64,000 nucleotides of DNA from assembly GCF_001194135.2 (NCBI RefSeq), contig NC_068983.1:42430668-42494667 (forward strand). Reading direction: 5' to 3'. The stretch comes from Octopus bimaculoides (taxonomy: Eukaryota). The position numbers were made by a program, and so were the translations under genes. Below the pieces are notes generated by a model. The model was not told the origin of the DNA and searched no databases. It worked only from the letters and a program-made list of their open reading frames with translations. Positions 24,201-27,200 of the stretch are shown one piece after another. Positions within the stretch are counted from its first letter, which is position 1. Each line of letters begins with the position of its first letter.

Positions 24201-27200
24201 ATATTATTCTCACGCACTTGTGTCATTTGATGCAGTCCTTGGACCCATCAGATCCTGTCATGCTATTCAACCTTTACTAAGATGGAAGATAAGATGTTTA
24301 AATGTGATAACGATGATAGTATATTTAGTCTTTGTATTTGGATTCCAAGATTCTTGATGTGAATTTGTGTGTTGAAACAAATCTTGTTGTTTTGGGAAGG
24401 TCATTACACCAATAAATATAACACATGCACTGGTTAAATATCACTTCCTTATTGTTAGTGAATTGGTTAAATATTTAACCAGTAAACTAACAATACAGGA
24501 ATTATAATTGAACCAGTGCACATGTCATTGTTATTGGTGTAATGAGCCTCCTATGATAACAAGAAAATAATGAGAGAGAGAGAGAGAGAGAGAGAGAGAG
24601 AGAAAGAGAGAGAGAGAAAGAGAGAGAGAGAGAAAGAGAGGACAAATGATTTCATTAATTTTCAGTCAGTGCCAAGCCAAAGCTGATAGCAGGGATCACT
24701 CATAGACAAGGAGATGATGATCTTGCTAGGTTAACTTCCTGCAGATATTCCATATGATGTCAACCACTTAACTAGGGCAATCAACTACTCGATGGCCTGC
24801 AGGGCAGTTGGCATTACATCTGGCTTTCATTGCAAAATTATATCCATTCAATGGTTAATGAGAATTTACAGCAAGGAATTGTAAAGGGTGTAGAAAGAAG
24901 TCAATGATAAAGTGATTAGTTTTGTGGGAAAATACTTCATCATCACCATTATTATTATTATTATTATTATTATTATCATCATCATCATTATCCGAACCTT
25001 CAGCCTCACCTAGGCAATGACTAGTGACAGAGACTTTTGGAGATATGCTGTGCTTGAGAAGACCCAGCAAGCCAAGTGAGACCATAACCGGTGGCCTATG
25101 CCAGTGGTGTATAACCAGCCCACTTATCAGTATCCTTCATTCATTGGACAATAAACTTTGCTTGTGAAGACCTGTTGAGGCAAGTGAAATCAAAATCACT
25201 GACGTGGTCGATGACTGTATCGCCTGACTGGCTCCTGTGCCAGTAGAACGTAAAAAGCACCATCTGAGTGTGACCATTGCCAGGGTTGCTGACTGGCTCC
25301 CATGCTGGTAGCACATAAAAAGCACCATTTGAGTGTGATCGTTGCTTTACTGGCACGTGAAAAACAACATTTGAATGTGGTCATTGCCAGTGCTGTTGGA
25401 CTAGCTCCTGTGCAGGTGGCATGTAAAAAACACCATTTGAGCGTTGTCATTGCCAGTACCACCTGACTGGCCCTCGTGCTCGTGGCATGTAAAAAGCACC
25501 CACTACACTCTCAGAGTGGCTGGCGTTAGGAAGGGCATCCAGCTGTAGAAACTTTGCCAGATCAGATTGGAGCCTGGTACAGCCTTCTGGCTCGCCAGTC
25601 CTCAGTCAAACCGTCCAACCCATGCCAGCATGGAAAGCGGACGTTAAACATCGACGATGGTGATGATTCAATCATAAGGAGGACAGCAGAATTTGTCACT
25701 GATTAAAGTGTGTTGGATCCGGGATATCTAGTCTTATCATTGGTCAATGAATTAACCAACTGTAATTGTATTCATTCCAAAATATCTCATTTGATGCCGT
25801 CAGCTGAATCTCAGACACGTTTACACAAACATGCAGGCATACAACACACGTATATGTTTACGTATACACTATTCTGAAATTGCAATCAAGACAAATGTAA
25901 TTGACAGACAGTCAGGCATGACTAATCCATAAATGTTAGTAAATGAATCTATAATTGCAGACTCCTGATTGTTTGTATCAAAACAATTTGAATTTGCAGG
26001 TTCTGAAGGTGTGTGTGTGTGTGTGTGTGTACAACAAAGAAGATGAAAATCTCAATGCAGCACAAGTTCAATATTCTTTTATTTGTTTCAGTCATTTGAT
26101 TGCGGCCATGCTGGAGTACCACCTTTTAATCAAACAAATTGACCCCAGAACTTATTGTTTGTAAGCCTAGTACTTATTCAATCGGTCTCTTTTGCCAAAC
26201 CACTAAGTTACGGGGGACATAAACATACGGTCGTCAAGTGATGGTTGGGAGACAAACACACACACACACACACACACACACATATATATATAGCAAATGA
26301 AAGACAGAAGATGGAAAATATACAAGAATTTATTATTAATCACGACAGTTGTTTCAACACCTCTAGTACCGATTCCTCTTGGGTGGGACACTCAACAACT
26401 GGTTCAGGAGCATCTGGTGATGCAGATGTATCTCGTCAGGTAATAAATAAATATAACTCGTTAAAATGAGTGTTCCACAACGTAACTTTCCATTTTGTAG
26501 AGAGAAAAGCAGCCAGATGGAGGAAATATCTTCATTTATAAAGAAGATCCAAAATAAAATCACAGATGACAAAAAGAGAAACGAACACACAATCCAGGGA
26601 GAAAAGTGTTAAAAATGACCGTTAACAGGTATGGATGTGTATATAAATATATATATATACACGAAGGGCTTCTTTCAATTTCTGTCTACCAAATCCACTA
26701 ACAAGGTTTTGGTTGACCCAAGGTCATAGAAGACACTTGCCCAAGGTGCCATGCAGTGGGACTGAACCTGGAACCATGTGGTTGGTAAGCAAGCTACTTA
26801 CCGCACAGCCACTCCTGCACCTATGGTAACAATTGTTTTTGCACCATTTCACTTTGAACCATATTGTGCACAAACACAGTTCCGAGATAACCAGTTCATA
26901 GGAATGTGTTTTGGCCAGCTGGAGTAAAAGAGCTCAAAACACAGAGTCTGAACATGACTATCGTTTATGAAAAACAAGTTCAACAAAATACATTTTGTTC
27001 TCAAAATCTTGCTGGCTGTTGAGACTACTTAGATGGAACGAGTGATCTTTCAATTAGTGTTTGACTTATACATGTACATATGTACCTATCTATCTATCTA
27101 TATCTATATATATATATATAAACACACACACATATATATCTACATATGTGTGTGTGTGTATATACACACACACACACATATATATATATATGCATATCTA

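Follow-up and report, generated by a model that had tools for sequence, protein, structure and literature searches.

Does an intron of the octopus AHCYL gene carry a working self-cleaving ribozyme? A sequence-only reading of the window (the whole stretch of 64,000 nucleotides of Octopus bimaculoides DNA analysed here) had described a complete canonical type I hammerhead in the transcribed orientation of that intron and proposed that it could still cut the nascent transcript. The intron placement and the sense orientation are confirmed, and the gene (IRBIT-type) encodes a protein 76–79% identical to AHCYL1/2 of other protostomes, with nothing closer in protein searches. Most likely, however, the motif, a degenerate one with weak and atypical helices, is no working RNA cutter but either a transposon relic that is dead or a look-alike.

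The core bases, stems and tetraloop that had been listed are all present, and the type I topology is correct (Table 1). The invariant hammerhead core (C3 U4 G5 A6 N7 G8 A9, G12 A13 A14, A15.1-U16.1, H17) is complete at 13/13 positions, with the boxes CUGACGA and GAAA set 77 nt apart. Stem I is nearly all A and U; its pairs include one U·G, and its single mismatch is U·U. Two of the stem II pairs are wobbles, including G10.1·U11.1 (26432/26356), and its mismatch is A·G. A single C-to-T change at a CpG would be enough to turn G-C into the G10.1·U11.1 pair. Helix III comprises only 2 bp (A15.1-U16.1 and a C-G pair) beneath the tetraloop AACU (26350–26347), which is the usual form of invertebrate type I hammerheads (PMC7229834). 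The AATAAA claimed to follow the motif is also there, but the minus strand of the window holds 60 such hexamers, so that by itself it is uninformative. Two alternative registers were rejected: the CAUCUG/CAGAUG hairpin cannot serve as helix II because no GAAA follows it, and the G after A9 cannot be a Penelope-type bulge because helix II would then break.

Table 1. The hammerhead-like motif, its carrier and its host intron (positions in the window).
Feature	Position	Strand	Remarks
Host intron, AHCYL (IRBIT-type) gene	22304..28711	minus	GT at 28711, AG at 22304; exons join in frame
tRNA-like head half of interrupted SINE, with (TA)n at 26636-26661	26636..26835	minus	23 BLAST matches in window
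Inserted segment bearing the motif, 345 bp, GC 36%	26291..26635	minus	Alignment: five other window SINE copies with flanking halves adjacent
3' half of interrupted SINE, with (TA)5(TG)n at 26251-26290	26090..26290	minus	17 BLAST matches in window
Full motif, hammerhead-like, type I topology	26450-26333	minus	All elements named by the sequence-only reading found
Stem I, 5' strand (UUAUUUAUUAC)	26440..26450	minus	10/11 pairs with 26343-26333; base-pair probability ~0.7
Core box CUGACGA (C3-A9)	26433..26439	minus	
Stem II, 5' strand (GAUACAUCU)	26424..26432	minus	8/9 pairs with 26364-26356; base-pair probability 0.004
Competing hairpin CAUCUG/CAGAUG	26428-26423 / 26416-26411	minus	Part of predicted minimum-energy fold
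59-nt loop II	26365..26423	minus	5' part contributes to competing hairpin
Stem II, 3' strand (AGAGGUGUU)	26356..26364	minus	
Core box GAAA (G12-A15.1)	26352..26355	minus	
Helix III (C15.2, loop AACU, G16.2), then U16.1, C17	26344..26351	minus	Predicted cleavage 3' of 26344
GUC	26346-26344	minus	Predicted cut between 26344 and 26343
Stem I, 3' strand (GUGAUUAAUAA)	26333..26343	minus	
AATAAA hexamer	26329..26334	minus	Overlaps stem I end

How readily might such a motif arise by chance? A match of its quality occurred in none of 200 local-Markov shuffles and for none of 719 permuted-core decoys. Among composition-matched decoy cores, 86 of 81,919 equalled it, which corresponds to 1.05e-3 per 64-kb window; with relaxed helix thresholds the rate rises to 0.006 per window (7/8 and 6/7) and 0.12 per window (5/6 and 4/5). 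Because the quality thresholds were fixed after the match had been seen, the fair chance figure lies somewhat above 1e-3. The motif is therefore rare for one window, yet at ~1e-3 per 64 kb a multi-gigabase genome should by coincidence hold tens of motifs as good. Boxes and complementary stretches may simply coincide here in intronic or transposon-derived DNA, AT-rich and of low complexity, that never was a ribozyme, a look-alike that we consider quite possible, if somewhat doubtful. The genome-wide expectation, the post hoc thresholds and the A/U composition of stem I all speak for such a coincidence. On the other hand, 1e-3 is still rare in a single window, and the motif lies near the 3' end of an insert in a window with other hammerhead motifs.

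Rfam scoring bears on the same alternative. No hammerhead family was matched at the gathering threshold across the whole window, nor at E <= 10 in a 601-nt search, a negative to be read with the fact that a clear minimal hammerhead elsewhere in the window (63343–63298) gets no match either. Only when 134 nt were searched did Hammerhead_1 (RF00163) appear, with 12.9 bits (E = 2.2) against a gathering score of 34; rescaling the E-value, about 0.25 matches with this score are expected by chance per window for Hammerhead_1 alone. The low score favours coincidence. The Hammerhead_1 consensus did, however, align over its full length, with agreement at C at N7, G10.1, C15.2-G16.2 and GUC, and C15.2-G16.2, C17 and G10.1 had not been demanded by our search descriptor, which argues against a look-alike. 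‘Canonical’ is nonetheless the wrong word for a motif scoring 12.9 instead of 34 bits, with a helix II that is neither compact nor G-C-closed and a non-palindromic loop 3. The sole notable Rfam match, SCARNA7, was spurious and driven by a (TG)n run.

The window itself supplied a folding control: the minimal hammerhead at 63343–63298 is a textbook Penelope-type motif, much better than the intronic one, and minimal-hammerhead matches occur at three loci in the window against 0.015 expected. Its predicted ensemble share is 0.11 and its self-duplex −5.7 kcal/mol. For the intronic motif, the hammerhead fold reaches −15.3 kcal/mol against an optimum of −22.1 kcal/mol (~7–9 kcal/mol above the predicted optimum), its predicted ensemble share is 6e-7, and the ensemble pair probability is 0 for helix III compared with 0.004 for helix II. 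The caveat attached to the original proposal, that the CAUCUG/CAGAUG hairpin competes with a stem II that has a 59-nt loop, is confirmed, for hairpin and loop dominate the predicted fold; even with loop II swapped for a tetraloop in silico, the hammerhead share is still only 4e-5. Fold z-scores of 0.12 and, for the 345-nt inserted segment, +0.82 (−61 kcal/mol against a shuffle mean of −65.1 kcal/mol) indicate an RNA no more structured than shuffles, as a chance look-alike would be. Nor would pairing of two molecules help: the helix III strand ACAACUGU lacks self-complementarity (self-duplex −1.0 kcal/mol) and the loop AACU is non-palindromic, so that, given that there is no second copy, the dimer route is closed. 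Nearest-neighbour folding omits the tertiary contacts of the hammerhead core, and inactivity is for that reason a prediction; as far as the model goes, the contrast between 6e-7 and 0.11 and the missing dimer partner weigh against the idea that this copy could still cut.

An active ribozyme would cleave the nascent AHCYL pre-mRNA after C26344 and so lower or regulate AHCYL output, or yield an RNA ending near AATAAA. The intact core in sense orientation is what one would look for in such a ribozyme, and the G·U at 10.1-11.1 retains G10.1. The single mismatches in stems I and II lie ~6 bp from the core, and natural type I hammerheads make loop-loop contacts at about that distance, a placement that may count in favour of activity. 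Amniotes, moreover, offer a precedent in the conserved intronic hammerheads cited in PMC7229834. Yet a kinetic trap is predicted to form upstream, the predicted share is minute, and helix III is too short for a monomer, with neither a palindromic loop nor a second copy for a dimer; even typical Penelope-type (PMC4209133) and amphibian (PMC7229834) type I motifs cleave inefficiently in monomeric form. Introns are also reportedly depleted of retrozymes (bioRxiv 10.64898/2026.07.22.740005), and the motif came with a recent-looking insertion and is no old conserved feature of the intron. We therefore judge an active intronic ribozyme improbable. Still further from what we expect is that the hammerhead, despite so great an expansion of its helix II, remains catalytically competent and cleaves the nascent intron of AHCYL/IRBIT, a conserved gene with housekeeping and signalling roles, in a mollusc-like invertebrate, having been delivered by a transposon and co-opted to tune the output of the host gene or to supply an intron-derived RNA that is stable.

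Regardless of activity, the setting of the motif is informative. The insert that carries it, 345 bp long and with 53 nt between the motif and the insert's 3' end, entered a (TA)n microsatellite within an older, tRNA-derived SINE. The two SINE halves are normally directly adjacent, and five other copies in the window are without the segment; the insertion, as read from these copies, suggests a retroelement fragment. The retroelement link drawn in the sequence-only reading thereby gains support, and insertion into (TA)n fits a truncated Penelope-like copy without proving it: Penelope-like elements have reported microsatellite targets, (TA)n included (PMC8557442), and Penelope-type genomic hammerheads are mostly solo motifs in truncated copies (PMC4209133).

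Searches for relatives of the insert were negative. BLAST revealed no second copy within the window, there was no tandem array across the motif site, and no copy turned up when the exact products of four local ORFs were looked up in public assemblies; of the pattern scans of metagenome contigs, one gave 0 matches and another 3 unrelated chance matches. That no related copy emerged from window, metagenome contigs or protein-indexed assemblies is a further point for a chance look-alike. Remnants of a reverse transcriptase or an endonuclease are absent from the segment, and nowhere in the window is there a long coding ORF or one for RT or GIY-YIG. Absence of terminal inverted repeats led us to reject a MITE or DNA-transposon identity for the insert; the segment also has no poly(A) tail and, the microsatellite itself aside, no clear target-site duplication. 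These absences, together with the failure to find a second copy although the window is very rich in repeats, would suit filler DNA, that is, a 345-bp segment captured during break repair at a fragile (TA)n/(TG)n microsatellite and carrying the motif incidentally. On present data, however, it looks the same as a 5'-truncated retroelement; we consider filler an unlikely origin.

Which hammerhead-bearing elements does the motif resemble? Type I hammerheads of metazoan non-LTR retrozymes and satellite repeats (RF00163; Cervera and de la Peña, 2020, PMC7229834) have in common with it the core boxes and the topology, a tetraloop-capped 2-bp helix III and low GC (36% here), and the 345-bp carrier is within the size range of mollusc retrozyme units (350–390 bp in mussel; PMC7229834). 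However, retrozymes are head-to-tail tandem repeats of 150–450 bp with a type I hammerhead in each, and their unit RNA is highly self-paired, whereas the motif here is non-tandem and its carrier has z = +0.82; on these two grounds a metazoan non-LTR retrozyme identity was rejected. Retrozyme helix II, moreover, usually has ~4 bp and a small loop, in contrast to 9 bp with one mismatch and a 59-nt loop here, and the motif further departs from the retrozyme type I form in its G·U instead of G-C at 10.1-11.1, its non-palindromic loop 3 and its 12.9 versus 34 bits.

Penelope-like minimal hammerheads (Cervera and de la Peña, 2014, PMC4209133) are similar in being solo motifs in apparently truncated retroelement copies, in their long helix II (7–8 bp) and in C15.2-G16.2. 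Insertion into a microsatellite (PMC8557442) and low expected monomer activity are further likenesses. The differences are several: the Penelope type has an unpaired base between A9 and 10.1, where here there is none and the G after A9 pairs as 10.1; it has a G10.1-C11.1 pair in place of our G·U; and its 15.2-16.2 pair and loop 3, if present, are palindromic, which C15.2-G16.2 fits but AACU does not. In addition, loop II is huge here, helix III has a loop, and no pseudo-LTR or RT-endonuclease ORF lies nearby. As for amniote HH9/HH10, these are likewise intronic and in sense orientation, but they are compact, ultraconserved and single-copy, whereas the motif here is insertion-borne and has no Rfam match to the HH9/HH10 families.

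Taking these observations together, we prefer, with roughly even confidence, to see the motif as an inert passenger, a type I hammerhead-like sequence in degenerate form that is carried close to the 3' end of a probably retroelement-derived fragment of 345 bp. The presence of motif and topology at a chance rate of ~1e-3 per window counts for a degenerate hammerhead, as do the Hammerhead_1 consensus matches and the invertebrate form of helix III. In favour of a retroelement relic are the (TA)n insertion, given the microsatellite targets of Penelope-like elements and the commonness of solo truncated copies, and the other hammerhead motifs in the window (three loci versus 0.015). Against a relic count the failure to find any relative of the segment or any RT/endonuclease remnant, and the 59-nt loop II, the G·U at 10.1-11.1 and the missing bulge after A9 (compare PMC4209133), along with the low Rfam score.

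As an inert passenger, the fragment would be a 5'-truncated piece of a hammerhead-bearing element, Penelope-like or retrozyme-related, whose ribozyme may have decayed after insertion or may never have been compact and canonical. During transcription of the intron, the CAUCUG/CAGAUG hairpin would be the first to form, leaving the 5' strand of helix II sequestered. That helix, with its pairs G·U, A-U, U·G, A-U and C-G, would be too weak to close the 59-nt loop, and the 2-bp helix III would find no partner copy for a dimer. With all three combined, the RNA would not attain the catalytic fold at a meaningful rate. The intron would presumably be spliced and degraded like others, leaving AHCYL expression unaffected.

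Should the motif be no more than a relic or look-alike, it is of little importance in itself. Many animal genomes contain thousands of hammerheads carried by transposons, and decayed solo copies are to be expected among them. Only if cleavage were shown would the locus say something about whether intronic ribozymes regulate host genes outside the amniotes. It does illustrate how a sequence can acquire or keep a full core and lengthy formal stems and yet not be a credible ribozyme, and the control at 63343–63298 cleanly separates a credible hammerhead from a formal motif.

One further likeness, drawn by description only, is with the half-core motifs in the 3' UTR of Naiad elements (Craig et al., 2021, PMC8557442), whose core boxes are likewise set unusually far apart, by 35–50 nt there and 77 nt here; Naiad's preference for (TA)n targets matches, and Naiad remnants have been noted in cephalopods (PMC8557442). 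The nested insertion into the SINE microsatellite is a dated and oriented event and, given the whole genome, could identify a family with an unusual hammerhead-like 3' end.

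The hammerhead-like motif (26450–26333, minus strand) lies in an intron of AHCYL (28711–22304, minus strand), in the sense orientation, and the earlier placement of this intron proved exact: it opens with GT at 28711 and closes with AG at 22304, and its flanking exons join in frame (...CNIYSTQ/NEVAAALAE...). The gene product belongs to the AHCYL/IRBIT type of adenosylhomocysteinase-like proteins and shares 76–79% identity with AHCYL1/2 from arthropods and one gastropod. The query for exon mapping was a human AHCY sequence, which served for exon location only; in this map the exon for residues ~253–279 was not found, and it may lie inside an assembly gap or be too short for detection. 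The intron also contains a 70-aa ORF (28030–28242, minus strand) weakly matching the hAT-family C-terminal dimerisation domain (PF05699; E = 0.0013, 18.9 bits, under the 21.4 cut-off), probably a hAT transposon remnant.

The main new result is that the motif is carried by a nested insertion. A composite SINE of tRNA origin, cephalopod-like in appearance, is densely represented across the window; its tRNA-like head is followed by an internal (TA)n(TG)n microsatellite and then by a 3′ half. At the motif locus, where its sense strand is the minus strand, the two halves are separated by a 345-bp segment. Since alignment showed that five other copies in the window have their halves parted by the microsatellite alone, the motif falls within inserted sequence, and its carrier went into the (TA)n stretch of a SINE that was already there. 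This supports the retroelement link proposed in the sequence-only reading, and Penelope-like elements are biased towards insertion in microsatellites, (TA)n included (PMC8557442). Some Naiad elements have core boxes with unusually long spacers, and Naiad remnants are kept in cephalopods (PMC8557442); Naiad kinship of the insert may be a lead.

In the segment (36% GC), 185 nt separate the 5′ end from the start of the motif, and the predicted cleavage site lies 53 nt short of the 3′ end. The segment has no second copy in the window, no tandem arrangement, and no terminal inverted repeats, poly(A) tail or protein-domain match, and its folding is below shuffle level (z = +0.82). It is near the size of mussel retrozyme units (350–390 bp); in contrast, retrozymes are tandem and highly self-paired, and the segment is neither. 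That it is non-transposon filler DNA strikes us as very improbable.

Coordinates of the motif, its carrier and other features of the window
Feature	Position	Strand	Detail
Stem I	26450-26440 with 26343-26333	minus	10/11 pairs; 1 pair U·G
Stem II	26432-26424 with 26364-26356	minus	8/9 pairs, 2 wobble
Stem III		minus	A15.1-U16.1 and C-G, AACU loop
GUC cleavage triplet	26346-26344	minus	predicted cut between 26344 and 26343
AATAAA	26334-26329	minus	
SINE head at motif locus	26835-26636	minus	order and orientation as expected
Inserted segment	26291-26635		345 bp, between SINE halves
SINE 3′ half at motif locus	26290-26090	minus	order and orientation as expected
SINE sites (examples)	7790-8145, 34733-35087, 40336-40679, 46569-47042, 52795-53136, 26090-26835		
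Penelope-type minimal hammerhead	63298-63343	minus	GACAC-CUGAUGA-A-GGCUGG-AGGGGAUA-UCAGCC-GAAAC-GUU-GUGUU
Hammerhead-core-like motif	16491-16530	plus	GAUAU-CUGAUGA-A-GGAA-GUUUUGUA-UUCC-GAAA-UA-UUAUU
Weaker minimal-hammerhead-like match	23462-23504	minus	host intron; AGUUA-CUGAAGA-G-AUUGCA-AGAG-UGCAAU-GAAA-UAAUUUAACA
N runs (approximate)	1597-1690, 6892-7790, 12400-12447, 40700-41000, 46800-46850, 56190-56520		

Core boxes, stems I–III, GUC triplet and AATAAA are all present on the minus strand as claimed, at the positions tabulated, and the motif reads UUAUUUAUUAC-CUGACGA-GAUACAUCU-(59 nt)-AGAGGUGUU-GAAA-C-AACU-G-UC-GUGAUUAAUAA. Stem I is A/U almost throughout, and the sixth pair out from the core is a U·U mismatch; in stem II one of the wobbles is the closing pair, G10.1·U11.1, and an A·G mismatch occupies the sixth pair. 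An independently written descriptor matched at this site alone on both strands of the window. The adjoining AATAAA adds little, because there are 60 such hexamers on this strand.

The Rfam search that had been proposed returned no match at gathering thresholds in the whole window; relaxing the limit to E ≤ 10 for 26100–26700 still brought up no hammerhead family. With a search space of only 134 nt, Hammerhead_1 (RF00163) aligned full-length in the register of the sequence-only reading, placing ~66 nt as a loop II insertion, and scored 12.9 bits (E = 2.2), where the gathering threshold is 34; by our own arithmetic, for a single family and the full window this amounts to ~0.25 chance matches. 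Lack of an Rfam match is not decisive, because the obvious Penelope-type minimal hammerhead at 63343–63298 is likewise unmatched. An SCARNA7 match at 26219–26365 (minus strand; E = 4e-5, but only 29 bits, with the gathering threshold at 65) was rejected as an artefact driven by the (TG)n microsatellite.

Metazoan type I hammerheads typically combine a 6-bp helix I and a 4-bp helix II with a helix III of 1–2 bp that ends in a small palindromic loop, and are often active as dimers in tandem repeats (PMC4209133; PMC7229834). Those of Penelope type carry one additional base following A9, the pair G10.1-C11.1, a helix II of 6–8 bp and palindromic 15.2–16.2 and loop 3 (PMC4209133), whereas the candidate lacks the extra base, the G10.1-C11.1 pair and the palindromic loop. 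Given also its low model score and 59-nt loop II, the label 'canonical' does not hold.

Could such a motif arise by chance? At the observed helix quality, matches occurred in none of 200 local first-order Markov shuffles and for none of 719 permuted-core decoys on real sequence. Scanning the real window, with its low-complexity and microsatellite structure preserved, for 81,919 decoy cores of matched composition gave 86 matches (1.05e-3 per window); with looser helices the rate rose to 6.2e-3 (7/8 + 6/7 pairs) and 0.116 (5/6 + 4/5). The motif is thus about a one-in-a-thousand event per single 64-kb window, a somewhat optimistic figure because thresholds were fixed after the match was seen. This rarity argues against a chance look-alike, as do agreement with the consensus at C15.2-G16.2, C17 and G10.1, which the descriptor did not require, proximity to the 3′ end of the insert, and minimal-hammerhead matches at three loci in the window against 0.015 expected from decoys. 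Yet tens of chance motifs of equal quality are expected in a few-gigabase genome, stem I is nearly pure A/U and there is no family evidence, so that coincidence is a possible, though less likely, explanation. For comparison, canonical type I motifs occur in cephalopod genomes at a density of about 0.006 per 64 kb, judging by the 235 Rfam-level Hammerhead_1 loci of a giant squid genome (PMC6962438). We give about even credence to the reading as a transposon-borne hammerhead that is decayed or atypical.

Self-cleavage is unlikely on the folding models, which ignore core tertiary contacts and so provide an argument rather than a measurement. The level of structure in the motif region is no higher than in shuffles (z = 0.12). 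In the minimum-energy fold of the 118-mer (−22.1 kcal/mol) stem I is retained, GAAA lies inside a small GUUG/CAAC hairpin and, bearing out an earlier caveat, a CAUCUG/CAGAUG hairpin replaces stem II. The best fold with all three helices reaches −15.3 kcal/mol, hammerhead-compatible folds make up 6e-7 of the ensemble, and pair probabilities are ~0.7, 0.004 and 0 for stems I, II and III. Substituting a tetraloop for the 59-nt loop in silico raised the hammerhead share only to 4e-5, and to 6e-4 with C at 11.1 too; the weak A/U- and wobble-rich helices thus appear as much to blame as the loop. The suggestion that this copy could still cut is not supported. We regard real ribozyme activity as very improbable, because an upstream hairpin, which emerges earlier in transcription, outcompetes helix II, a monomer would need a longer helix III, the loop is non-palindromic with no partner copy in the window, and monomer cleavage is poor even in standard motifs of the Penelope type and in amphibian ones of type I (PMC4209133; PMC7229834). 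Retrozymes are also depleted from introns, according to a recent preprint (bioRxiv 10.64898/2026.07.22.740005), as might be expected if active copies in genes were selected against. The motif is an ordinary and probably dead representative, or else a mimic, of a well-known class.

As a ribozyme candidate, the minimal hammerhead at 63343–63298 is far stronger than the motif. It is textbook Penelope-type: A9 is followed by a bulged A, and there are G10.1-C11.1, a 6-bp helix II and a palindromic AACGUU without loop 3. Stems I and II form in its minimum-energy fold, and its hammerhead-fold share, our yardstick for the motif, is 0.11. It is oriented as AHCYL, with an (AAT)n run ~45 nt upstream and a putative exon (62273–62214) downstream. 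The match at 23462–23504, with A-U at 10.1–11.1 and helix III region unpaired, is probably due to chance, although minimal-hammerhead matches taken together greatly exceed what decoys predict. That at 16491–16530 has its 3′ part within an inverted repeat, and could be a chance motif or reflect truncated Penelope-like copies as an inverted pair. The MITE-like element carrying it (16298–16602) adjoins a (TA)n run and has terminal inverted repeats of ~100 bp, whose two arm blocks (50 and 41 nt) each show 98% complementarity.

As for other repeats, the SINE is ~360 bp long, with at least 10 copies in the window at 75–90% identity, and its microsatellite also coincides with assembly gaps; the N runs, 1,891 in all, represent such gaps, mostly at microsatellites inside repeats. 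Tandem or degenerate 65–108-nt repeats occupy 25182–25524, beside a second SINE type at 25462–25668; they belong to a separate family with further occurrences at 4914–5191 and 53897–54131.
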